Assembly (NCBI GenBank): GCA_965153285.1
Contig: OZ229121.1
From: Podarcis tiliguerta
Lineage: Eukaryota
Strand: one strand, 5' to 3'
DNA: 64,000 bases
The notes beneath the pieces are model-generated. The model searched no databases, had not been told where the DNA came from, and saw only the letters and a list, made by a program, of their open reading frames with translations. Every line of letters begins with the position of its first letter. Positions within the stretch are counted from its first letter, which is position 1. The translations under genes were made by a program, and so were the position numbers. Below, in pieces: positions 10,773 through 56,776 of this stretch.

Positions 10773-10807
10773 CAGTGGTACTTCAGGTTACAAACACCTC
10801 GGGTTAG
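10773..10807 (+). mobile_element. Truncated Tigger/pogo-like MITE left end
   Basis: TA|cagtggtacttcaggttaca, the same terminus as 27965 and 56366. Confidence 0.6.
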
Positions 10808-10808
10808 A

Positions 10809-11233
10809 GTGGGGTAGCTTGTGGCATTCTGAATACCAGACTGATATTTTTAAAATGCATTCTCCCTCTGCCTGCCCAGCCCCCAAATATTTATAAATCA
10901 CAGGAGTTTCAGGTAGCCACTGTCATCTTTAAAAATGGTCTGAGTGACCAATGCCATGTAGGACCGAAGGAACTAAGCAGCCTTCTATATTTTGGGCAAA
11001 TCCTGCTTGTTATTTTATCTTCTTCTGCCTGTTTTACTCAGAGGCAAAACAAAAGCTGGTGGCCTTGCAGAGAAGACAACTTCTCCTTCCCATGATCACC
11101 CTTGTACATCCTTAATTCTGATATTATAGTTTCGACTGATTTTTATCCTTACTGTGCAGAGTTGCACAGTTACACTAGGTTAAAGATGACCACAATTTAG
11201 CGGTATATGAATTGTTGAGATTAAATAACTGTA
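10809..11233 (+). repeat. Dispersed direct repeat, copy 1 (copy 2 at 36218-36624)
   Basis: Collinear high-identity match from gtggggtagc...ggcattctgaat to ...gattaaataactgta. Confidence 0.9.
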
Positions 11234-12789: not shown

Positions 12790-13043
12790 TACTGGTGTCA
12801 TAAGGCTCATCAATGAGTGCTGACATACTGGAACGCTTGTTAACAAAAACTATAATATAATCATGAAATGCTATTAAGCAACTATATTTTCCTGACCTGT
12901 TCCTGGAACAGAAGCAACTTTTATGCAGGAGGTAGTAGGGCAATCTGGATTATACCACACCACTCCATTATCAGCTGCACAGACTTTCATGCTGTGTACA
13001 CCCCATGCAGTTATGGCACATTTCCCCCACACCAAAAGAACTA

Positions 13044-15395
13044 CCGTATTTTTCGTCCCATAGGACGCTCCGTCCCATAGGACGCACCTACTTTTTGGGG
13101 GGGGAAAGAAAGGAAAAAAATTTTTCCATTTATTTCCCCCCCAAAACCAGGTCGGGGAACAGTGGGATGGCGGCGCTGCGCCTCCCCGCTGTCCCCCGAC
13201 CTTGTGGGGCTGGCCGATGTCTGCCTGGCGCCAGGGCGCTCTGCTGCAGGGCGCCCCATGCGCCGGGCGGCAGCTGCCGCCCGCAAGCCTTGCGCGCCGG
13301 GGGGAGTTCTCCCCCGGTGCGCGAGGCTTGCTGGCACTTGCGCGAAGCACGGGGCGTCCTCCGAAGGGCGCCCCGTGTCCCGCGCTGCAGGCTGCCGCCG
13401 CAAGCCTTGCGCGCGGGGGGGGAGTTCTCCCCCGGTGCGCGAGGCTTGCTGGCACTTGCGCGAAGCACGGGGCGTCCTCCGAAGGGCGCCCCGTGTCCCG
13501 CGCTGCAGGCTGCCGCCGCAAGCCTTGCGCGCGGGGGGGGAGTTCTCCCCCGGTGCGGAAGGCTTGCGGACACTTGCGCGAAGCACGGGGCGTCCTCCGA
13601 AGGGCGCCCCGTGTTCCGCACTGCAGGCTGCCGTCCGCAAGCCTTGCGCGCCGGGGGGGGAGTTCTCCCCCGGTGCGGAAGGCTTGCGGACACTTGCGCG
13701 AAGCACGGGGCGTCCTCCGAAGGGCGCCCCGTGTTCCGCGCTGCAGGCTGCCGCCGGCAAGCCTTGCGCGCCGGGGGGGAGTTCTCCCCCGGTGCGCGAG
13801 GCTTGCTGGCACTTGCGCGAAGCACGGGGAGTCCTCCGAAGGGCGCCCCGTGTTCCGCGCTGCAGGCTGCCGCCGGCAAGCCTTGCGCGCCGGGGGGGAG
13901 TTCTCCCCCGGTGCGCGAGGCTTGCTGGCACTTGCGCGAAGCACGGGGAGTCCTCCGAAGGGCGCCCCGTGTTCCGCGCTGCAGGCTGCCGCCGGCAAGC
14001 CTTGCGCGCCGGGGGGGAGTTCTCCCCCGGTGCGCGAGGCTTGCTGGCACTTGCGCGAAGCACGGGGAGTCCTCCGAAGGGCGCCCCGTGTTCCGCGCTG
14101 CAGGCTGCCGCCGGCAAGCCTTGCGCACCGGGGGGGAGTTCTCCCCCGGTGCGCGAGGCTTGCTGGCACTTGCGCGAAGCACGGGGCGTCCTCCGAAGGG
14201 CGCCCCGTGTCCCGCGCTGCAGGCTGCCGCCGCAAGCCTTGCGCGCGGGGGGGGAGTTCTCCCCCGGTGCGCGAGGCTTGCTGGCACTTGCGCGAAGCAC
14301 GGGGCGTCCTCCGAAGGGCGCCCCGTGTCCCGCGCTGCAGGCTGCCGCCGCAAGCCTTGCGCGCGGGGGGGGAGTTCTCCCCCGGTGCGGAAGGCTTGCG
14401 GACACTTGCGCGAAGCACGGGGCGTCCTCCGAAGGGCGCCCCGTGTTCCGCACTGCAGGCTGCCGTCCGCAAGCCTTGCGCGCCGGGGGGGGAGTTCTCC
14501 CCCGGTGCGGAAGGCTTGCGGACACTTGCGCGAAGCACGGGGCGTCCTCCGAAGGGCGCCCCGTGTTCCGCGCTGCAGGCTGCCGCCGGCAAGCCTTGCG
14601 CGCCGGGGGGGAGTTCTCCCCCGGTGCGCGAGGCTTGCTGGCACTTGCGCGAAGCACGGGGAGTCCTCCGAAGGGCGCCCCGTGTTCCGCGCTGCAGGCT
14701 GCCGCCGGCAAGCCTTGCGCGCCGGGGGGGAGTTCTCCCCCGGTGCGCGAGGCTTGCTGGCACTTGCGCGAAGCACGGGGAGTCCTCCGAAGGGCGCCCC
14801 GTGTTCCGCGCTGCAGGCTGCCGCCGGCAAGCCTTGCGCGCCGGGGGGGAGTTCTCCCCCGGTGCGCGAGGCTTGCTGGCACTTGCGCGAAGCACGGGGA
14901 GTCCTCCGAAGGGCGCCCCGTGTTCCGCGCTGCAGGCTGCCGCCGGCAAGCCTTGCGCACCGGGGGGGAGTTCTCCCCCGGTGCGCGAGGCTTGCTGGCA
15001 CTTGCGCGAAGCACGGGGAGTCCTCCGAAGGGCGCCCCGTGTTCCGCGCTGCAGGCTGCCGCCGGCAAGCCTTGCGCGCCGGGGGGGAGTTCTCCCCCGG
15101 TGCGCGAGGCTTGCTGGCACTTGCGCGAAGCATGGGGAGTCCTCCGAAGGGCGCCCCGTGTTCCGCGCTGCAGGCTGCCGCCCGCAAGCCTTGCGAGCCC
15201 AGGGGAACTCCCCCCAGGTGCGCAAGGCTTGCAGATAGCTTCCTGGAGCCTGGAGAGCAAGAGGTGTCGGTGCGCACCGACGCCTCTCACTCTCCAGGCT
15301 TCCGCGAAAGCCTGCATTCGCCCCATAGGACGCACACACATTTCCCCTTCATTTTTGGAGGGGAAAAAGTGCGTCTTATAGGGCGAAAAATACGG
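13044..15395 (-). mobile_element. Non-autonomous Tc2/pogo-like (TcMar) DNA transposon, copy 1, with internal 119-bp tandem array
   Basis: TA|ccgtatttttcgtcccataggacgc ... gcgtcttatagggcgaaaaatacgg|TA; CCGTA termini with TA TSD are Tc2-type; no transposase ORF; strand given relative to copy 2. Confidence 0.9.
13283..15183. repeat. GC-rich tandem array, 16 units of 117-120 bp (mode 119), two hairpins per unit
   Basis: Unit gcaagccttgcgcgccgggggggagttctcccccggtgcgcgaggcttgctggcacttgcgcgaagcacgggg(c/a)gtcctccgaagggcgccccgtgttccgcgctgcaggctgccgccg; ~75% GC by hand count. Confidence 0.97.
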
Positions 15396-15708
15396 TATAT
15401 CTTCTTAAGGGTGCTGAGAACTGCAGCTCTGTGAGCGGCAAAATACAGCTCCCAGATTCTTGAAAGAGATGTGTTTTTAAAGTCCTTTGCATGGTGCATA
15501 TGCAGCCCCAGTGTGTTGGATGACTCAATTCAAAGTGCTTTCAAGTCCTTAACTCTGAAATAGGGAGTTCCCTGACTTCCAACAGGCCATGATGTCATTT
15601 TTCCTTTGCAGAGGAATGTGGGTTCTAGCCATGCTGCAAAAAAAAGATCCAAGCCAATCCAAGCCAGACTTGAAGTCACTGCCAAATAACTGATCACCAC
15701 TATCTACT

Positions 15709-16010
15709 ACAGCCTTGCCGTACTCCTTTCCCAATTTTAAACCAATCAGTTGTTCCATATCCAGTTCTAACTGTAGCTTCTTGTCCCACATAGAGATTTC
15801 TCAGGAGACAGATGAGGTGATCAGGGACTCCCATTTCTTTAAGAACTTGCCATAGCTTGCTGTGGTTGACACAGTCAAAGGCTTTTGCATAGTCAATGAA
15901 GCAGAAGTAGATGTCTTTCTGGAACTCTCTAGCTTTCTCCATAATCCAGCACACGTTTGCAATTTGGTCTCTGGTTCCTCTGCCTCTTCTAAATCCAGCT
16001 TGCACTTCTG
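15709..16010 (-). mobile_element. Bov-B (RTE) LINE reverse transcriptase fragment
   Basis: QAGFRRGRGTRDQIAN...FCFIDYAKAFDCV...GVPDHLICLLRNLY.GQEATVRTG.GTTDWFKIGKGVRQGC. Confidence 0.95.
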
Positions 16011-17275
16011 ATCAGTTATGCATCCTCAAAAGAATTTTGCAATGCACCCTGATCATTTGTGATTTTAAAAATGGTGGAAGCGAGACCTAGCGGCTGGCAC
16101 AAAAGGGCTTGGACTCACTCCCCCCCCCCCAAAAAAAAAAAACAACCAACAAGCACCCACAACATTTCTGCACTCTGGACTGGGCAGACATGCAATGCTG
16201 AGGAATTGGCAACTATTACAAGCTTAGGGGAAAATTTATAGGGTCGATGTAGAGCATTCATATCCTTGATGAAACAGTGGCTGACTAACTTTCAGAAGAA
16301 CCCACATACATACATACACAATTTCCCTGGAAGTCTGTGCCATGGTAGAGAAAGTTATGCATTGTTGAGAATTGCAAGTGTGCAAGACACACACACACAC
16401 ATTATATGTCTCCAGTCCTTGATCTTTCTAAGCCAAAAAAGAGACATGTAGGCAATATTCCACCTAAGCTCATCAAGAAGGAAACCTCATGCCTTCAAGT
16501 GCTCCAGCCAATAGTTGCAAAATAAATGAATGACTGCAGCTTTTAAATTCTTAGCATTTTATATTTATTGCATGGTATTGTGTTGCTGGTAGTAATATCA
16601 CATGGGTTTTCATGATGGTTCTGTGCTTAGCCTGCATGCTTTCAAAATGGATAGCAAGAATCCTTAAGGAATGAGTAGATAAGCAAGATTTCACACACAC
16701 AATGTTTTCATATCATTTTGGACAGAATAAGTGCTATATTCACTGTTTGCGCTTCTCCAATACACAGAGATCTCTCTGCCTCATTATGCACAGCACTGCA
16801 GAAACAAGGAGGGGAACCCATGTACTTCAAGCACCTCAATCAAAAGCCTTAATATAGTTCGGAAACACTGACTTCTGTGATTTCATTCCAATTTCCACTG
16901 CACAAACGCCACATTAAGAATTTCACGGGAAACTGGGTGTAGGGAGGACTGGGAAGGAGAGCAAAGTGCCTCATTTTAGAACACCTTTATGCAGAAACAG
17001 AATTTCAACAGGAAAGCAGAGAACAGGTTTGGTTTTCCATTGGATTAGCCCACCACCATGGCACTATCTCTCTAACCAATCTAGACCCTACTTTAATGTG
17101 AACATAGGTGCATGCACACATGTGTGAAAGAATAGCTACCTTTCATTTCAGCATTCAGTTAGAGAAATATACTGCATAATAATCCAGAGGTAGTGTAATG
17201 TGGAAGCAAAGAGAGTGAGCCATGCATCAAAAAGTCTCTGGGTAAGAGATTCCCTGTGCTAAGGGCTTTGTAAAC

Positions 17276-18449
17276 CAGGCATAGGCAAACTCAGCCCTCC
17301 AGATGTTTTGAGACTACAGTTCCCATCAACCCTGACCACTGGCCCTGTTAATAATAATAATAATAATAATAATATCTTTATTGTCATTGCCCCCTTCGGG
17401 GACAACGAAATTACCTGGCTGCTCCATAAAAACACTAATTAAAAAATATAGTAAAATACAGCAAAGGAGATTTGATGACTTTCAAAGTCCGGGCTTCCCA
17501 TTCAGGGCCGAGATCGCTCTGGAGAAGAAGCTGTTCTTAAGACGGCTCGTTCTTGTCTTCATCGTCCTGTATCTCCGTCCCGACGGCAAGAGCTCGAAGA
17601 GACAGTGACCAGGATGCGATGGATCTTTTACTATGTCCAGTGCCTTCCTATGGCACCTTGTGGCATAAATCTGCTCTAAGGTGGAGAGTGGGCAGCCAAC
17701 AATGCTCTCTGCTGCCTTCACAACCCTGCGCAACCCCATCCTGTCCTGGGTAGTACAGCTTCCGTACCACACACATAAGCCATAAGTAAGCACGCTCTCA
17801 ATGGCACAGTGATAGAAGGCAAGCAGCAGTTTCTGCGGAAGATGGTTTTTCCTTAGTATTCTCAAAAAATACAGTCTCTGCTGCGCCTTCTTCACAAGCC
17901 CTCTTGTGTTGACACTCCAGGACAGATCCTCTTGTAACTCAATGCCCAAAAATCTGAACGTTGTTACCCTCTCCACACAGACCCCATCAATCAAAAGTGG
18001 CTGGACATTGCTCTTCTGTCTCCTAAAGTCCACCACAAGTTCCTTTGTCTTCCTTGTATTTATGAGCAAGTTGTTAGCTCTGCACCACTCTGTCAGCCGC
18101 TCCACCTCATCTCTATAATCCATTTCACCCTCCCTTTCAGAGATGAGCCCAATCACGGTTGTGTCATCTGCAAATTTGACAACCCTATTACTAGGGTGAG
18201 TAGCGACACAATCGTACGTGTAAAGAATATAAAGGAGCGGACTGAGTACACATCCCTGTGGTGTTCCTATGTTAGTTTTAAGCATATTAGAGGTATAAGG
18301 GCCCAACCGAACCCTCTGGGGGCGGTCTGACAAAAAGTCCAATATCCACCCACAAAGTGATAATGGAAGCCCCAGATCTTCCAGTTTAGCTAGGGATGAT
18401 GGGAGTTGTAGTCCCAAAACATCTGGAGGGCCGAGTTTGCCTATGCCTG
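17276..18449. mobile_element. URR1-like hAT MITE split by Rex1 insertion (halves 17276-17350 and ~18387-18449)
   Basis: TIRs caggcataggcaaact / agtttgcctatgcctg; 8-bp TSD ttgtaaac / tcgtaaac. Confidence 0.9.
17351..18386 (-). mobile_element. 5'-truncated Rex1/Babar-clade LINE (RT C-terminal half, 3' UTR, (ATT)n tail)
   Basis: WILDFLSDRPQRVR, GTPQGCVLSPLLY, KFADDTTVIGLI, KKAQQRLYFLR, DPSHPGHCLFELLPSGRRYR; stop at 17482; 3' stem-loop, AATAAA and (ATT)n tail. Confidence 0.9.
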
Positions 18450-18607
18450 TCGTAAACCAGTATCACTAGGCTTGTGAATATGGAGAAAACAACAGTGTCC
18501 CAAGCAGAGGGGGTAGAATTAAGGATCACTGAGATAAACATCTGTGAAACATCTGTATATGTAAAACACACAGCATATGAATGCTGAAGTATTATTATAA
18601 TCATTCA

Positions 18608-18730
18608 CTTATCAATCAATCAGTCATCTTATTTGTATGCCGCCTTTCCAAAGCTAAATCATGTTCAAGGTACCTGACAACTTATTAAAAAATTACATAA
18701 TTACAAACATAGCAAAAGTGGAAATAAACA
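18608..18730 (-). mobile_element. L2-like 3' end with (ATTG)n tail; related copy at 62957-63080
   Basis: atcaatcaatc...ttatttgtatgccgcctttcc...aaaaaattacat.attacaaacata shared with 62957-63080. Confidence 0.55.
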
Positions 18731-20005
18731 ATAAACATCAAAAAGTACACAACCAAACTGAACAGTTTCCACATAAATCATAAGAATATCATAAGAATAT
18801 AATATTATTATTATTATTAATAATAGCCTCCCCTCCACGAAACAAGACCCCCTAAACATTATCCTAGCTCAAGCCCAGCACCCTCAGCTTTTTGTAGTTG
18901 GAGTCAGTCAGGGCCCCACCCTCCCAGGTCAGGTGGGGAAAGGCCTGCAAAGCAGGCAGCAGTCTTCCAGAACTCACAGCCAAGATGGTCTCTGGACTCT
19001 GGATGGTCTCTGGCAGCCTCAGCTTCTGCAGCTGGAGTCAGGGCCTAGTCTTAGGCTCAGTCAAGGGGAAATTTGAATATGAATTTGAAACCAGCTGTGA
19101 CATTCAGTTAATGAGCATAATCTGTATCCCTTCTAGACAATAAGTATGGTTTGGGATGTAAAACGGGATAATTCAAGACTGTGCAGCCACAATTTTAATA
19201 GGAGCTGTACATCATTTGCAAGTACTGAAACTTTTTGCCTCAGAAAACGCAATTTCATGTTTTCTACAGAAGTATCCCACGCAAATGATTCACAATTGCT
19301 TTCCATTTTTATTGCTTATTAATTGTACTGTCCCAATTTTATATTCTTCCTCCTCTGTAACTGACTGTTGGAAAGGTACAGCCAATGAGACCCTGTAATG
19401 GCAGCCAAATTAGTTTCCACTGCACTTCATAGGCGGACAGAGCCAAGTTGAAAAGTGATTCTAACTATGCCCACAATATAAAACTTCATACAATGTAGCC
19501 AGAAGCAACACAAGCTGTTTGATCCTTGCTTTGTGGGGAGAAGGACAAAAATGCAAGCCACAGTCATCTCTCCCAATTTCATGCTTTGGGGAGAAATGTT
19601 GTTGAGCTAGTAAAAAGGCATGAAGAAACACTTGGGAACATACTCTGTATGCTTTAAGGAACAAAACTGGTGGGGAGGGGGCTGGCTAAATCTTGTTCTC
19701 AAAAGTGTTGCTGAAATGTGTACACCATCCTCCCTGATCAACAAGAACATTGGTCTTAAAAAGAGCACAATAGCAGTGAAACAACAAAATATCTAAAAGC
19801 AATCACACACTCTCAGAGCTAATAATTTCTGTTCCAGGGACAGAAACTTTCAACCATCAGATGCCTGGGTAAACAGGGAGGGCATAAAAAAAAAACCAGG
19901 GACCCACCACTGAAAAGACCCTGTCACCAACCAGGTAGCAGCAATTGTCCCCGCCCCCTCTTTTGCTTATGCTAGAAGGTATTCAATGTCAACCCAAGAT
20001 ATTTA

Positions 20006-21683
20006 CCGTATTTTTCGCCCTATAGGACGCACTTTTTCCCCTCCAAAAATGAAGGGGAAATCTGGGTGCGTCCTATGGGGCGAATGCAGGCTTCGCGGAC
20101 CTCTCCGCAAACAGCAGGAGCGCTCCCGCTGCTGGCGGAGAGGTGCCTGCATGCTGAAGCCTGCGTGCGCTGAGCTCAGCGCGCCCAGGCTTCGCGGACC
20201 TCTCCGCTAGCAGCGGGAACGCTCCCGCTGCTGGCGGAGACGTGCCTGCATGCTGAAGCCTGCGTGCGCTGAGCTCAGCGCGCCCAGGCTTCGCGGACCT
20301 CTCCGCTAGCAGCGGGAACGCTCCCGCTGCTGGCGGAGACGTGCCTGCATGCCGAAGCCTGCGCGCGCTGAGCTCAGCGCGCCCAGGCTTCGCGGACCTC
20401 TCCGCTAGCAGCGGGAGCGCTCCCGCTGCTGGCGGAGAGGTGCCTGCATGCCGAAGCCTGCGCGCGCTGAGCTCAGCGCGCCCAGGCTTCGCGGACCTCT
20501 CCGCCAGCAGCGGGAACGCTCCCGCTGCTGGCGGAGAGGTGCCTGCATGCCGAAGCCTGCGCGCGCTGACCTCAGCGCGCCCAGGCTTCGCGGACCTCTC
20601 CGCTAGCAGCGGGAACGCTCCCGCTGCTGGCGGAGACGTGCCTGCATGCCGAAGCCTGCGCGCGCTGAGCTCAGCGCGCCCAGGCTTCGCGGACCTCTCC
20701 GCTAGCAGCGGGAACGCTCCCGCTGCTGGCGGAGACGTGCCTGCATGCCGAAGCCCGCGCGCGCTGAGCTCAGCGCGCCCAGGCTTCGCGGACCTCTCCG
20801 CCAGCAGCGGGAACGCTCCCGCTGCTGGCGGAGAGGTGCCTGCATGCGGAAGCCTGCGCGCGCTGAGCTCAGCGCGCCCAGGCTTCGCGGACCTCTCCGC
20901 TAGCAGCGGGAACGCTCCCGCTGCTGGCGGAGACGTGCCTGCATGCGGAAGCCTGCGCGCGCTGAGCTCAGCGCGCCCAGGCTTCGCGGACCTCTCCGCT
21001 AGCAGCGGGAACGCTCCCGCTGCTGGCGGAGACGTGCCTGCATGCCGAAGCCTGCGCGCGCTGAGCTCAGCGCGCCCAGGCTTCGCGGACCTCTCCGCTA
21101 GCAGCGGGAACGCTCCCGCTGCTGGCGGAGACGTGCCTGCATGCCGAAGCCTGCGCGCGCTGAGCTCAGCGCGCCCAGGCTTCGCGGACCTCTCCGCTAG
21201 CAGCGGGAACGCTCCCGCTGCTGGCGGAGACGTGCCTGCATGCCGAAGCCTGCGCGCGCTGAGCTCAGCGCGCCCAGGCTTCGCGGACCTCTCCGCTAGC
21301 AGCGGGAACGCTCCCGCTGCTGGCGGAGAGGTGCCTGCATGCCGAAGCCTGCGCGCGCTGAGCTCAGCGCGCCCAGGCTTCGCGGACCTCTCCGCTAGCA
21401 GCGGGAGCGCTCCCGCTGCTGGCGGAGACGTGCCTGCATGCCGAAGCCTGCGCGCGCTGAGCTCAGCGCGCACAGGCTTCGCGGACCTCTCCGCTAGCAG
21501 CGGGAGCCAGCACTGGGCTCCCACGGCTTGCAGAGAGCTGCCTGTTTGGGGGCTGGGGTCGGGGGAAGCTCGGGCTTCCCCAACCCCGCGCCTGGGGGGG
21601 AAATAATTTTTTTCCTTTATTTCCCCCCCAAAAAACTAGGTGCGCCTTATGGGACGGTGCGTCCTATAGGGCGAAAAATACGG
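20006..21683 (+). mobile_element. Non-autonomous Tc2/pogo-like (TcMar) DNA transposon, copy 2, with internal 99-bp tandem array
   Basis: Perfect 27-bp TIR ccgtatttttcgccctataggacgcac / gtgcgtcctatagggcgaaaaatacgg, TA on both sides; both subterminal regions match copy 1 in reverse complement. Confidence 0.92.
20088..21507. repeat. GC-rich tandem array, 14 full plus 1 partial 99-bp palindromic units
   Basis: Unit aggcttcgcggacctctccgctagcagcgggaacgctcccgctgctggcggagacgtgcctgcatgccgaagcctgcgcgcgctgagctcagcgcgccc; ~73% GC by hand count. Confidence 0.97.
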
Positions 21684-22832
21684 TAGCTGCCTGAAGCATT
21701 ATTCAGATGGTGCTAATTCTGCCTTAGGAAGAGCCGAAATGAATCTCCTTCCCTGCTGCAAATATGAATACTAGTCTCGCTGCATCATCCAGAAGCCAAT
21801 TCCTACCTTCATGTATTGTTTCCTCCATGGTGCCAGAGAGAGCAGGATGTTGCATAGCATGGGTAGCCCTGAAAGCATTATTGCTGCATAAACCACAGCT
21901 TCCCCAACCAGCCTTACACAGATGGCATTATAGTACACATGTGTAGGACGAGGGTGCAATGCAACAAATCTAAACACACATATCTGGAAGCTGCACTAAA
22001 AGAACTTATAGCTCATGCTTGGCATGAATGAAGGGCAGGGTTCAATCCTTGGAATTTCCTTGAATAATAGGCCAAGAAAGACCTATTTGAGAGTTGTCAG
22101 TCAGAACAAGCTATGGCTTCTGGTCCCGCCTGCCTTAATGGGGACAGCTCCCACAACAGCAGGGGATCATTGGCAAATGAAAAAGAAGAATAGCAGAGGG
22201 TAAATCATCCTTGCAAATTTCCCCAGGGATGGGGAATAGGCTTCACTCTCAGTCCATCTCTGTACCTGGCTCTCGCTCTGGCATGGAAAGGGAGGCGCCG
22301 AGTGCAAAAGCACTTCGCTTGGCGAAAACCGTCCTACTACCACCATTAAGAAGCAGAGACTCTCTGTTTATTTGGATATTTAATTGGCTTTAAAATACTG
22401 GCATGTGATGGAAAAGGGTTGCAACAACATACTGCCAAATATGCCAGCTACATGGATCAAAGGTTTGAACTGAGATAAGATTTTATTTGGCGTGAGAGTC
22501 GGTTCGGGAGAGGGAAGCCCGTGGTTTGTTTATTCTAAGCTTCTTTTATATATTTATGATTCGGCAACCCTCTCCAGAATATAAGATAAAAAGATATTTA
22601 CAAGTGAAGAAGGGACATTGGAGTAGTATTGCTATTAGCAAGCAAAAATGGAAACTGTGTGTGATCTAAAATGAAGGAGGGGGAGGGGAAGCTGAAGTAC
22701 GACTGTGTTGGAAAGAGAGAGTCATTCCCCTCACCTCTGTTTAAAAACAACAGACAAGGAAAAAGAGACTGAGATTTGTGCGTGCTACTGACAGAATGTA
22801 ATCTAAGATAAAGATTAATTGGGCCATACATC

Positions 22833-26395: not shown

Positions 26396-26758
26396 AAAGG
26401 TAAAGGTACCTCTGCCCGTACGGGCCAGTCTTGACAGACTCTAGGGTTGCGTGCTCATCTCACTCTAGAGGCCGGGAGCCAGCACTGTCCGCAGACACTT
26501 CCGGGTCACGTGGCCAGCGTGACGAAGCTGCTCTGGCAAACCGGCACCAGAGCAGCACACGGAAATGCCATTTACCTTCCCGCTATAAAGCGGTACCGAT
26601 TTATCTACTTGCACTTAAGGGTGCTTTCGAACTGCTAGGTGGGCAGGAGCTGGGACCGAACAACGGGAGCTCACCCCGCTGCAGGGATTCGAACCGCCGA
26701 CCATGCGATCGGCAAGTCCTAGGTGCTGAGGTTTTACCCACAGCGCCACCCGCGTCCC
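26396..26758 (-). mobile_element. Full-length Sauria SINE
   Basis: Minus-strand head gggacgcgggtggcgctgtggg, B-box ggttcgaatccc, core 'ctagcagttcgaaagcac...gtgcaagtagataaat', (ACCTTT)n tail. Confidence 0.92.
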
Positions 26759-26802
26759 TGGACACCCGAGACACCTTTAGAGAGTGGGTAATTACAAAAA
26801 GT

Positions 26803-27964: not shown

Positions 27965-28203
27965 CAGTGGTACCTAGGGTTACATATGCTTCAGGTTACA
28001 GACACTTCAGTTTACAGACTCCCCTAACCCAGAAATAGTGCCTTGGGTGAAGAACTTTGCTTCAGGATGAGAACAGGAATCGTGCTCTGGTGGCACAGTG
28101 CCAGCGGGAGGCCCCGTTAGCTAAAGTGGTGCTTCAGGTTAAGAACAGTTTCAGGTTAATGGACCTCCGGAATGAATTAAGTTCTTAACCCGAGGTACCA
28201 CTA
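27965..28203. mobile_element. Tigger/pogo-like MITE
   Basis: TA|cagtggtacctagggtta ... ttaacccgaggtaccact; same family as 56366-56614. Confidence 0.85.
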
Positions 28204-31149: not shown

Positions 31150-31398
31150 CTCCTGCCAACCTAGCAGTTCGAAAGCACGTCGAAGTGCAAGTAGATAAAT
31201 AGGTACCACTCCGGTGGGAAGGTAAACGCCATTTCTGTGCGCTGCTCTGGTTCGCCAGAAGCAGCTTAGTCATGCTGGCCACATGATCCAGAAGCTGTAC
31301 GCCAGCTCCCTCGGCCAATAAAGCAAGATGAGCACCGCAACCCCAGAGTCATCCGTGACTGGACCTAATGGTCAGGGGTCCCTTTACCTTTACCTTTA
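31150..31398 (+). mobile_element. 5'-truncated Sauria SINE
   Basis: Core plus (ACCTTT)n tail; TSD acagtcggtat / acagtcagtat. Confidence 0.92.
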
Positions 31399-35443: not shown

Positions 35444-36217
35444 GGTTTAAAAGGAAATACACTAGCTTGCATAGTTTTAGACTGCACAACTGTTGTTCAC
35501 ATGAACTGTAAAAACTGTTGCCATGTTCTTGCTTACTTGGTTCTGTCAATTGTGGGAGGTCTGTAGCTCAGTGATTTGCATGCTTCCAGGTGGAGTTGTG
35601 GGAAAGCTTCTCCTTCATTTGGTCCTTCCTGAAACCCTGCAGAGCCACTGCCAGTCAGTGTCGACAATACTGAACTAGATGGACCACAGGCCAGACTTGA
35701 AGCTGAACTGAAGTTTTCTTATTACCTGGATTTTCTTGAGTTCTGTTCTCTGTTCTGATGGTTGTTTTGATTATTATGCTGTTTTAATATTGGTCTAAAG
35801 GATTGGAACCATTCTACTGCTTCACTCAGTGAATGGTAGTTCAGACTAAGATTAAATAAATAAGACCAAACATTCATCTGGCTTACTTGGTTTGTGAATC
35901 ACATTTGTAGACATCAACATTTTTTTTCCCTTTTAAAATAAAAAATTAAAGGTCCCTAAATAAACTTGGTGCTTCAGCCACCTCTAGATCCAAAAGGATT
36001 CCTACCTGTGGCAATGTCTGTGGGGTGCTCTTGTCAATCACTGCCAAAGTAATCTTTAATATCTTGATCTTGCAGCCTTGTCTTCCTAAGAGACTTTCTC
36101 TAAAGTGCAGAAGTAATCGCCGTCAGAACTGCCATTCGAACTGTTATCAATCCCTTGGCTCTTCTATTGGACGACTGCTAAGCCTTCCAGCATCTCTTTA
36201 CAAATGCAAGGCGCAGG

Positions 36218-36624
36218 GTGGGGTAGCATGTGGCATTCTGAATGCCAGACTGATATTTTTAAAATGCATTCTCCCTCAGCCCACCCAGCCCCCAAATATT
36301 TATAAATTACAGGAGTTTCAGGTAGCCACTGTCATCATTAAAAATGGTCCTAGTGACCAATGCCATGTAGGACCAAAGGAACTGAGCAGCCTTCCATATT
36401 TTGGGCAAATCCTGCTTGTTATTTTATCTTCTTCTGCCTGTTTTACTCAGAGGCAAAACAAAAGCTGGTGGCCTTGCAGAGAAGAGAGCTTCTCCTTCCC
36501 ATGTACTTCCCTTGTACTTCCTTAATTCTGATATTTTGTCCTTTCTGTGCAGAGTTGCTTGTACACTAGGTTAGAGACGACCGCAATTTAGTGGTATATG
36601 AATTGTTGAGATTAAATAACTGTA
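36218..36624 (+). repeat. Dispersed direct repeat, copy 2 (copy 1 at 10809-11233)
   Basis: Collinear high-identity match. Confidence 0.9.
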
Positions 36625-44083: not shown

Positions 44084-45638
44084 TTACTTGTTCGTCCTTA
44101 ACCTCCCATTCCAGTAATGTTCCAACATAACACGTGTGTGTTTTGCCTGTGCATCAGATTTAAACTGTCCTTTCCTCCCCTCCCCAGAATTTTTGCATTT
44201 GCTCTGCGAATGACTCAAGAATGGTCCAAAACCCATGGCAAGTTCTCCAGCTATATAGCATGCTGTGTGGGAACCACAAGGAGGCAGCTCTGAGTTCCTA
44301 TTGGAAGAATTATTGGGTGCCAGAAATGCAAGGATGTCAGAAGCTGTCCACTGTACAGCAGAGCACATCAATTTACACATTCATTGAGATCAAGAAGTGA
44401 GGCTGAGTGCACCTGTGTTGTGAGGCAAGATGGTTTGTACCCGGAGAAAGAGCCTATTCAATTATGACTCATCTGTGAAATTCTCTCTGCAGAGAAGATT
44501 ACTTGGCGCCTACATTGCTGCCTTGTTGGTGCCAAGCAATACATTTTTATTCTCTGAGGCTTATTGAGTTTTAATTGTTCTAATCTGCTGTCCTAATTGC
44601 AGGTTTTTATCATTTCTTTTATGGTCGATCTGTGGCACCAAGCTGATTTTGATTTGATTTTGTCTTGTTGTTTACTGTTTGGGGAACCATTCCATTGGAG
44701 AGCTGTATATAGATATATAAAATAATTGTTCATTGTAAGCCACCCAGAGAACCTTGCGTTATGGAGTGGCACGCAAGTGTTATTAATAACCAACCAAATA
44801 AATACTTCACTGCTGCCACATGCAATGGAACATATCAGGCAACTAAACTGGTAGAGTAACATTTCCGGGGGAGTGATACTAAAAACTGGAATTGACATAG
44901 ACATTTCCAGTTATATAATTTTTCAGCAGCAAACATCTATCTGAGAATGTCATTTCAACCATTGACACTTGCAGAGACCTCTAGGGGCATAATTTAACAA
45001 CAGTTAACCAAGACCCAGCCATGACACAGTGTCATGATTTTTCTCCCTTTGCCTATCTGTACATTTTATTTTCAGTAGGATTTTATTTCGTTTTTTAAAA
45101 AAAGGTTTATTTTGTGTCTTGGGAAATCAGCCTTCACGGACATTTATCACTGGAAATATAATCCTCGTAAGCCAACCTCCATCCACATATCTACAGCAAT
45201 CAGATAGGCTGGCTTGCCTGGCTCTGTGTTCCACTCTTTCCATTTGGCTTTGTTCAGCACACCATACCAAGATTTTATGCAAGAGTCAATATTTAGAGAT
45301 TATCACTAGCTTTGTAGCTCAAAAGGGATTTTTCAAAGGAAGATGTGGGAGCTAGCTTCCCCATTCCCTGGGCTGCCTTATAAGTCAATGGGAGTTAGCT
45401 TCTAATGCCTCCCCACCGTCACCAAAAATAAAATCAGCCAGGTTTTAATTTTGCTTTCGTCACTGGGTGATTTTCAATTCTCAGAGGCACATAGAGACTT
45501 TCCAAGTTTGCTACATTCAACACAGAGTCACACCCAGTCACAACTCCCTAAAAGGAACCTGTCTGCAAAGGCAGGTTTGTTGTTTTCATAATTTACACTT
45601 GCCTCTAGGCATATACCATTAAAAATGTGTTAAGAGTA

Positions 45639-45994
45639 AAGGTAAAGGTAAAGAGACCCCTGACCATTAGGTCCAGTCGTGACCGACTCTGGGGTTGTGG
45701 CGCTCATCTCGCTTTATTGGCTGAGGGAGCCGGCGTACAGCTTCCGGGTCATGTGGCCAGCATGACTAAGCCGCTTCTGGCGAACCAGAGCAGTGCATGG
45801 AAACGCCGTTTAACTTCCCGCCGGAGCGATACCTATTTATCTACTTGCACTTTGACGTGCTTTCGAACTGCTAGGTTGGCAGGAGCAGGGACCGAGCAAC
45901 GGGAGCTCACCCCATTGCGGGGATTTGAACCGCCGACCTTCTGATTGGCAAGTCCTAGGCTCTGTGGTTTAACCCACAGCGCCACCCACATCCC
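45639..45994 (-). mobile_element. Full-length Sauria SINE
   Basis: (AAAGGT)n at left, head at right; TSD gtgttaagagta / gtgtttagagta. Confidence 0.92.
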
Positions 45995-46896
45995 GGGTGT
46001 TTAGAGTAGGGATGGGCAAATCAGTTAATCTTGGGTTCTTATTTTTCAGTTTTCTGTATATCCACGTCACGTCAGTTTGCAATGGTCCTCCTCGGCTATT
46101 CCAAACATCTCTGTCCAAGCCTTCTTCCACCGTGAGCCGATGCTAAGAGAAAAGCTGTGGCTGGACCAGAGCCACAAATGCTCAGGATTCTACCATCACC
46201 TGTGCAGGTGTGCCCTCCCCGTCTTACTATCTACCACAGTTATAAAACCCATATAATGTGTGGGCAGGCAGTGTCCTGGGGATGCAATCCCTTCCTGACT
46301 CAACCAGATCCTCTGCCGTTCTGTCGCTCAGTACTTAGCAGAATCCCTCAGATCAGGAAGACACCGTGAAAAGCCATTTCTATTTTAATTCTGAACACAG
46401 GCACACAATCACACTGTGCCAAAAGGAAGAGACCACAGCTGGTACGGAAATTAAATTTACTTGCATGCTTCCAATAATGTATTAGACACAGTGCAAATGA
46501 TAGAGGGATAACAATAAAGAAAACACATTGGAAATTTAGGCCTAGCAGGGGACTTAAGAAGTTTAGGGCATTCTACTGAATAATTTCTGTGACTCTTCCT
46601 AAAAAAAACACACCCCAAAATGCGTTTATTTCTGCTCTTTGTGCAAGCATATGGAAAACAATGATAAACCGGTTCTCTAATGGTCACATTTTATGTCCTC
46701 GTTTAAAAAATGGGGACAAACTGTTAGGAAAGGAACTCTAACCCCAATGGTTAGATTTTTCTTTCTCTTCACAGTTGCACTTTTTCAAATATCAAGACAT
46801 TTTCAGATGTTTCACTTTTAAAGATAATTCTAAAACTTTGTTTATTTACATGTGTATTTTATGCTGCCTGCCATAAAATCCCAAGATGGTATACAG

Positions 46897-56249: not shown

Positions 56250-56776
56250 TTGCTCCTCCAGGCTTCCTTTTGCAACATGCTTTCCAGGTCCAAGCAGTTT
56301 CGTCTTTGTCCCACTGCTTCCCCCAGGAAAACCCACTGTTTACCATTGAATTGGAACAAATGGTACAGTGGTACCTTGGGTTACAGATGCTTCAGGTTAC
56401 AGACGCTTCAGGTTACAGACGCTTCAGGTTACAGACTCGGCTAACCCAGAAATATTACCTCGGGTTAAGAACTTTGCTTCAGGATGAGAACAGAAATCGC
56501 GCGGCGACAGCGCTGCAGGCCCCATTAGCTAAAGTGGTACCTCAGGTTAAGAACAATTTCAGGTTAAGAATGGACCTCCAGAACGAATTAAGTTATTAAC
56601 CCAAGGTACCACTGTAATCCACAGAAACCCCAGCTGCTGTTTGTTTCAATTCAGTGGTATAACCGGTGGGTTTTATTAGGGAAAGCGACAGGATGAAAAA
56701 TACCTACACAGACAGACGTGGAAAGTGCAGGCCTTTGCCTGGAAAGCGTGGCACGAAAGAAAGTCTGGGTGAGCCC
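56250..56776. mobile_element. Old fold-back (palindromic) MITE, PIF/Harbinger-like, interrupted by a Tigger-like MITE
   Basis: Left gctcctccaggcttccttttgcaacatgctttccagg pairs with right cctggaaagcgtggcacgaaagaaagtctgggtgagccc, followed by TTA. Confidence 0.6.
56366..56614. mobile_element. Tigger/pogo-like MITE
   Basis: TA|cagtggtaccttgggtta ... taacccaaggtaccactg|TA. Confidence 0.9.

Follow-up and report, generated by a model that had tools for sequence, protein, structure and literature searches.

We analysed a stretch of 64,000 nucleotides (nt) of contig OZ229121.1 from the Podarcis tiliguerta assembly GCA_965153285.1, hereafter referred to as the window, and focused on positions 13044 to 21683, where two GC-rich elements with the architecture of MITEs (miniature inverted-repeat transposable elements) are located. 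Element A (13044-15395, 2352 bp) and element B (20006-21683, 1678 bp) are separated by 4.6 kb, and each carries a tandem array between two dissimilar ends, E1 and E2, that terminate in terminal inverted repeats (TIRs). The features of the two elements, with their strands, are as follows.

13042..13043, no strand: TA target-site duplication, left of element A
13044..13125, + strand: element A, end E2, with a 3-mismatch copy of the 27-bp TIR at 13044-13070, two direct copies of the 14-bp motif CCYATAGGACGCAC at 13057 and 13074, and a G-run/A-T hairpin
13126..13247, + strand: element A, GC-rich single-copy interior containing the hairpin 13154-13197, plus the array's diverged edge
13248..15232, + strand: element A, array of 119 bp x16.7, two hairpins per unit (50 nt and 46 nt)
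13400..15063, + strand: element A, two consecutive 832-bp (7-unit) blocks within the array
15247..15300, + strand: element A, 54-nt single-copy hairpin with AGCCT/AGGCT at its base
15308..15395, - strand: element A, end E1, with the TIR at 15369-15395 (1 mismatch) and an inverted, hairpin-forming pair of the 14-bp motif (15322, 15369)
15396..15397, no strand: TA target-site duplication, right of element A
20004..20005, no strand: TA target-site duplication, left of element B
20006..20098, + strand: element B, end E1, with a perfect 27-bp TIR at 20006-20032 and a hairpin at 20019-20079; its inner 12 nt are already the start of the first 99-bp unit
20087..21505, + strand: element B, array of 99 bp x14.3
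21502..21601, + strand: element B, single-copy interior with hairpins at 21502-21522 and 21555-21586
21602..21683, - strand: element B, end E2, with two direct copies of the 14-bp motif (21640, 21657) and a perfect TIR at 21657-21683
21684..21685, no strand: TA target-site duplication, right of element B

Two elements built on one scaffold

The 27-mer TIR, CCGTATTTTTCGCCCTATAGGACGCAC, has exactly four matches in the 64 kb (zero expected by chance), and these are the four termini of the two elements: 13044 (+, 3 mismatches), 15395 (-, 1), 20006 (+, 0), and 21683 (-, 0). Both elements are flanked by TA on either side. A preliminary description of this DNA, made from its letters, had proposed two elements 4.6 kb apart with common TIRs, a match of about 90 bp at one end, and a looser match at the other. 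The alignments agree with all of this, as E1 is 96% identical over 93 nt (A 15308-15400 versus B 20001-20093) and E2 is 89% identical over 85 nt (A 13041-13125 versus B 21602-21686). Past the TIR, E1 and E2 of one element are unalike, and each resembles its counterpart in the other element. Given that E1 and E2 swap sides between the copies, A and B lie in opposite orientation.

Within one element, the two ends match each other in inverted orientation over these 27 bp and no further. The 14-bp motif CCYATAGGACGCAC is found twice in each end, giving 8 occurrences in the window versus 0.22 expected; the E1 pair is inverted and forms a 61-nt hairpin (z = -8.0 versus shuffles), while the E2 pair is direct. 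A TIR scan and a blastn search with both elements detected no fragments of the family in the other 60 kb of the window. Without the arrays, the scaffold measures ~260-370 bp, compared with a MITE size criterion of under ~800 bp and full copies of 1678 and 2352 bp. We also observed that the E2 ends at 13044 and 21683 are properly inverted and 8.6 kb apart, and this pair could in principle mobilise as a composite together with the 4.6 kb of host DNA.

Unrelated arrays of double hairpins

Tandem Repeats Finder (TRF) resolved the interior of element A into 119 bp x16.7 (13248-15232, 96% matches) and that of element B into 99 bp x14.3 (20087-21505, 97% matches), matching the 119 bp x16 and 99 bp x14 arrays of different sequence previously reported. 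We compared the two consensus units by local alignment on both strands and found that 158/300 and 38/300 dinucleotide shuffles scored as well; no homology between the 119-bp and 99-bp units was therefore detected, their likeness being no better than that of shuffled sequence.

Despite this difference in sequence, every unit in both arrays consists of two near-perfect palindromes (a double hairpin). In the 99-bp unit, the first hairpin (H1) is centred at offset 34.5 and the second (H2) at offset 87.5, across the unit boundary, and a stem also extends over the unit boundary in element A. Every module had been described as a hairpin, including four single-copy ones, and all of them indeed fold better than shuffled sequence: units and single hairpins have z values of -4.1 to -8.5, and the single-copy hairpins have values of -8.0 (15247-15300), -3.7 (21555-21586), -2.9 (13154-13197), and -2.2 (21502-21522, the weakest). 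The bracketing of many modules by AAGCCT/AGGCTT was likewise borne out. This motif sits at the stem bases of the hairpin modules and is enriched in the de-replicated interiors of both element A (5 versus 0.35 expected, matched by 0/1000 shuffles) and element B (3 versus 0.30 expected, matched by 4/1000 shuffles).

Unit divergence is high at the array edges and low in the homogeneous centres, and the unit variants are ordered and non-random. The two 832-bp (7-unit) blocks in the array of A differ at only 2 sites and represent a recent higher-order duplication. Units of B have a mean pairwise difference of 2.1-2.7%, with the first unit (u1) differing at 5-8 sites. The array of B begins within E1, at the 12-nt repeat CAGGCTTCGCGG, which closes E1, opens every 99-bp unit, and also serves as the 3' arm of H2. 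The variable sites shared among copies of H1 (offsets 22, 33, and 55) coincide with its three mismatched pairs, and the minority letter at these offsets always restores perfect pairing. For the pair at offsets 22/47, the units of the window mostly read T.G, with C-G confined to u5 and u8. In contigs of three related organisms, the same position is occupied by A..T, with both arms changed and the palindrome kept, a comparison that concerns a single pair in paralogous contigs.

CpG-island composition and lack of coding potential

The array of element A (1985 bp) has a GC content of 75% and an observed/expected CpG ratio (CpG o/e) of 0.96, and that of element B (1419 bp) has values of 73% and 1.02, compared with a CpG o/e of 0.17-0.31 in the flanks. 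Both arrays pass the sequence criteria for CpG islands (length >200 bp, GC >50%, CpG o/e >0.6). Nearly half of the CpGs in the window (498/1123, 44%) fall within the two elements, which occupy 6% of its length.

All reading frames are open over the arrays because the sequence is devoid of A/T-rich stop codons. We rejected a coding reading of these open reading frames (ORFs), since the Pfam signals in them (SAP, SSI, Cro, and DUF5876) were either below threshold or noise summed over the repeats; no single stretch of the array ORFs passed, and neither element contained a transposase gene. No autonomous transposase partner was found within the 64-kb window, and a search of the whole window against Rfam at gathering thresholds returned 0 matches.

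Recent insertion of element B

We compared element B and its flanks (19400-22300) with short-read contigs from four runs at 88% likeness. These runs carry four species labels and comprise X1, from the best-matching organism, and X5, X6, and X10, from three related organisms. In all four runs, a contig joined 20003 directly to 21684, skipping 1680 bases, with 2 letters fitting both sides (X5, 1489 bp; X6, 1782 bp; X10, 510 bp; X1, 648 bp, extending 44 nt past the joint). No filled-site contig running from the flank of B into its TIR was present among the contigs listed for any of the four runs. The flanks of B differ from the window by ~0.6-2.5% in these runs. The clean empty site with a single TA in four runs thus indicates that B is a very recent insertion, confined among these samples to the assembled genome or haplotype. 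Excision by Tc1/mariner-type elements usually leaves footprints, and the single clean TA accordingly suggests that B was never inserted in these samples, rather than excised.

Still-mobile cut-and-paste transposons are uncommon in amniotes. The absence of B, with a clean TA, from four other samples makes this family a candidate for ongoing activity. The array in B is probably mostly older than the insertion and probably arrived as cargo from a donor copy, given that its units are 2.1-2.7% apart, whereas the two TIRs show no difference and genomes ~1% diverged lack the insertion. We also noted that the summed contig depth rises 10- to 30-fold in the flanks of B (19788-19981 and 22116-22300) in all four runs, which suggests that B inserted between two other moderately repeated sequences.

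An abundant family with a common interior

Between 6,676 and 19,369 contigs were matched per run, mostly at the element ends. Taken qualitatively, the summed word depth of E1 exceeded that of the flank ~25,000-55,000x across the four runs, with 4.6 million versus 84 in X1 and 1.0 million versus 19.6, 387 thousand versus 10.6, and 1.29 million versus 52 in the other three. In each of the four organisms, members of the family are very abundant, and the presence of two copies per 64 kb is consistent with this.

The bins of the 99-bp unit were also deep in X1, a sample without B, indicating that near-identical units exist at other loci. Units similar to the 99-bp repeat were found in all four organisms, and those of the relatives were fewer, more diverged, and marked by diagnostic letters. 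The view of this family as a disperser of minisatellites is therefore upheld by two observations, namely the clean TA empty site of B in four runs and the 99-bp units located elsewhere in a sample that lacks B. The probable transport of arrays as cargo points the same way.

Contigs that leave the reference after E1 at 20093 share one common continuation in the four runs (agreement, 0.76-0.86), and its 30-mer corresponds to element A at 15278-15307 with 3 mismatches. As the commonest continuation of E1 is that of A, the arrangement in A is the family norm, and the direct junction between E1 and the array in B is derived. In the related organisms, contigs that extend over this junction of B cover fewer than 31 nt of E1. 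At the opposite side, loose contig ends at 21547 and 21581 mark the stretch 21547-21581 as common to other copies. Some X1 contigs link the TIR of E1 to E2 through just 21 other letters, which indicates that very small copies without arrays exist.

These results bear on the earlier proposal of a fixed scaffold with a hypervariable palindromic payload made of interchangeable cassettes. One scaffold carrying two unrelated palindromic arrays is indeed present, but "interchangeable" and "hypervariable" were overstated or without support, given the dominance of the A-type continuation of E1 in the four runs and the occurrence of 99-bp-like units across species. We found no evidence that cassettes are freely exchanged.

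A proposed origin as array-bearing subfamilies

We consider it likely that elements A and B are two array-bearing subfamilies of one very high-copy, non-autonomous, TA-targeting MITE of the Tc1/mariner type. A transposase acting in trans would recognise the TIR of 27 bp together with the 14-bp motif CCYATAGGACGCAC, a putative binding site that is present twice per end. The interior is a chain of GC- and CpG-rich palindromes sharing AAGCCT/AGGCTT stem bases, in which short repeats at module borders (e.g., CAGGCTTCGCGG), together with hairpin or cruciform formation, may promote replication slippage and unequal exchange. Individual sublineages would each have grown a different double-hairpin segment into an array, and the arrays may later gain or lose units where they stand, as A suggests with its duplication of 7 units (832 bp), and travel with the transposing element. 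At least the 99-bp subfamily transposed very recently, in the line of descent that led to the animal sequenced. A segment lying between short direct repeats is a classic substrate for slippage or unequal exchange, and may thus provide a simple origin for the array of B; such an origin would also explain why AGGCTT-type motifs are placed at module borders. Overall, the data fit array-bearing subfamilies arising from a canonical multi-hairpin interior, rather than cassette swapping.

Several points weigh against this interpretation. Only two copies, A and B, were read directly, and the family-wide evidence consists of short contigs at 88% likeness in which paralogues are mixed, with a summed word depth that does not amount to a copy number. 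The lengths of the arrays and the exact 832-bp duplication are those given by the assembly. The assignment to the Tc1/mariner superfamily derives from the TA and the TIR, with no autonomous partner found, and the 14-bp motif is a candidate binding site. Moreover, CpG-rich palindromic arrays may outpace their flanks in mutation, which would weaken the argument that the array of B predates its insertion.

We weighed these points together with other ways in which one scaffold could have come to carry two arrays. True cassette exchange, in which template switching in gap repair or ectopic recombination links the ends of the scaffold to unrelated palindromic arrays at AAGCCT/AGGCTT joints, would allow any chassis to carry any payload. 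It would accommodate the absence of detectable homology between the arrays, the enrichment of AAGCCT/AGGCTT at module bases in both elements, and the fact that homology between A and B ends within a few bases of an AGGCTT. Nevertheless, a single continuation dominates behind E1 in four species, a short direct repeat within E1 marks the start of the array of B, as local duplication predicts, and no chimeric junction was seen, leaving such exchange an unlikely explanation. We regard it as quite improbable that, in elements that are themselves real, the assembler over-expanded or mis-joined either the long arrays or the 832-bp duplication of A. The contigs are short-read only and neither array is spanned by a read, the 832-bp blocks differ at just 2 sites, and contig cover within the array is patchy; yet patchy cover is expected when near-identical units are placed at one site, the unit variants are ordered and non-random with diverged array edges, and 99-bp units are found at high depth in independent samples.

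The CpG-island composition (GC 73-75%, CpG o/e ~1 versus 0.17-0.31 in the flanks) would also suit interiors captured from the host, that is, fragments of CpG islands or GC-rich minisatellites taken up in a Pack-MITE-like manner. We hold this to be very unlikely, as one palindromic architecture and one stem-base motif run throughout the interior, shared ends included, no part of either element is present elsewhere in the window, and the array ORFs are without protein-domain signal. It is hardly credible that the locus is a functional cluster of hairpin RNAs (precursors of microRNAs, small interfering RNAs, or PIWI-interacting RNAs) that happens to lie in a transposon. Such a cluster could account for tandem stable hairpins of 40-50 nt and for the recurrence of pairing-restoring variants at mismatched stem positions, but restored pairing is equally expected from quasi-palindrome correction or from ancestral perfect palindromes, and perfect pairing over stems of 20-24 bp around a 4-nt loop is characteristic of palindromes at the DNA level. 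Rfam gave no match at gathering thresholds, and, as weak evidence, no run recorded as RNA contains the stretch.

Beyond the preferred reading of two array-bearing MITE subfamilies, a bolder one can be put forward with considerable doubt: an active lizard family of ~10^4 copies may continuously make and spread CpG-island-like palindromic minisatellites, whose symmetry would be kept by hairpin-templated correction. A hint of such correction comes from the recurrent variants on mismatched stem pairs, including the one pair that is A..T in the relatives and C-G or T.G here. If this were true, new CpG islands, sites that are fragile or form cruciforms, and seeds for satellites would arise genome-wide from this family in an amniote.

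Comparison with known array-carrying elements

Array-carrying transposons are known as a kind in clams, flies, and frogs, and DINE-type elements are DNA transposons with internal repeats that expand and can seed satellites. The closest parallels to the lizard elements are offered by the tandem-repeat MITEs of bivalves (DTC84 of the clam Donax trunculus and the oyster pearl/CvA-type elements), which likewise have a central array between conserved inverted-repeat arms (PMC3879986). In DTC84, the arms were termed a "cassette" for the core repeats and linked to satellite birth, the palindrome at the unit junction was viewed as a likely hotspot of length change, and the arrays contain ordered variants (PMC3879986). 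The junction palindrome has its counterpart here in H2 of the 99-bp unit and in the stem across the unit boundary in A. However, the bivalve elements contain up to ~5 core repeats, duplicate AA at the target, and carry a microsatellite on one side of the array (PMC3879986), whereas the lizard elements have a TA duplication, a 27-bp TIR, 14-17 double-palindrome units, and CpG-island composition, without a microsatellite tail. With neither the AA duplication nor the microsatellite, the lizard element is an analogue of the pearl/DTC84 type, not a member. That the arms of a MITE can serve as a cassette holding internal repeats, with palindromes where units join, is already published for clam DTC84 (PMC3879986); what is new here is the very recent mobility, the probable array cargo, and the distinction between a canonical and a derived interior.

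The Tetris foldback transposon of Drosophila virilis, whose internal tandem repeats fed a satellite, is similar in being a DNA transposon with expanding internal repeats able to seed satellite arrays (PMC4079207). Its repeats lie inside long inverted arms, in contrast to the one-direction arrays between short TIRs described here. We rejected a foldback element as a candidate, since the arrays are unidirectional and the end-to-end inverted identity is just 27 bp.

Among lizards, the TcMar-N families of Anolis are recent Tc1/mariner MITEs that include the Tc2-related TcMar-N4 (PMC3014272). The present elements resemble such Stowaway-like and TcMar-N MITEs in their TA duplication, short TIRs, non-coding nature, high copy number, and recent activity in a lizard, but differ in their internal palindromic arrays, which were not reported for the Anolis families (PMC3014272). 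The Tc2-like affinity named in the earlier description would be a candidate placement. Satellites derived from short interspersed elements (Squam SINEs) are known in squamates and similarly show dispersed reptile repeats giving rise to tandem arrays (PMC10702118). Their parent is a retroposon and their arrays do not lie between TIRs, whereas the arrays described here descend from a cut-and-paste element and travel with it.

The earlier remark that this family was not recognised as a described lizard system is in line with the literature searched (Repbase and Dfam outside its scope), which yielded no description of the family in lizards. The TIR string appeared in the literature only in two Caenorhabditis elegans papers on unrelated topics, and a TIR scan of JGI metagenome contigs gave 0 matches, a result uninformative for a lizard repeat.

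The family inserts blocks of 1.4-2 kb that are CpG-rich, cruciform-prone, and, judging by sequence, unmethylated-looking into AT-rich, CpG-poor DNA. It thus offers a tractable system for studying the birth of minisatellites and satellites on transposons, the upkeep of palindromes, and the possible effects of mobile CpG islands on nearby gene regulation.

Other repeats in the window

A second, unrelated MITE-like element, whose inverted arms of 58 nt are 91% complementary, lies between A and B (17276-18449). Its halves are separated by a 5'-truncated long interspersed element (LINE) on the minus strand, which ends in (TAA)n at 17349-17374 and whose ORF (17482-18417) contains RVT_1 and an ALKBH8_N-type domain. 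We further found a 16-bp tandem unit, GGTTACAGAC(A/G)CTTCA, at 27978-28019 and again at 56379-56436, 28 kb apart, which is probably part of another dispersed repeat. Three additional pairs of dispersed repeats were detected, two of them direct (10806-11094 and 36215-36503, 95%; 26589-26761 and 45825-45997, 86%) and one inverted (31150-31398 and 45637-45885, 90%).

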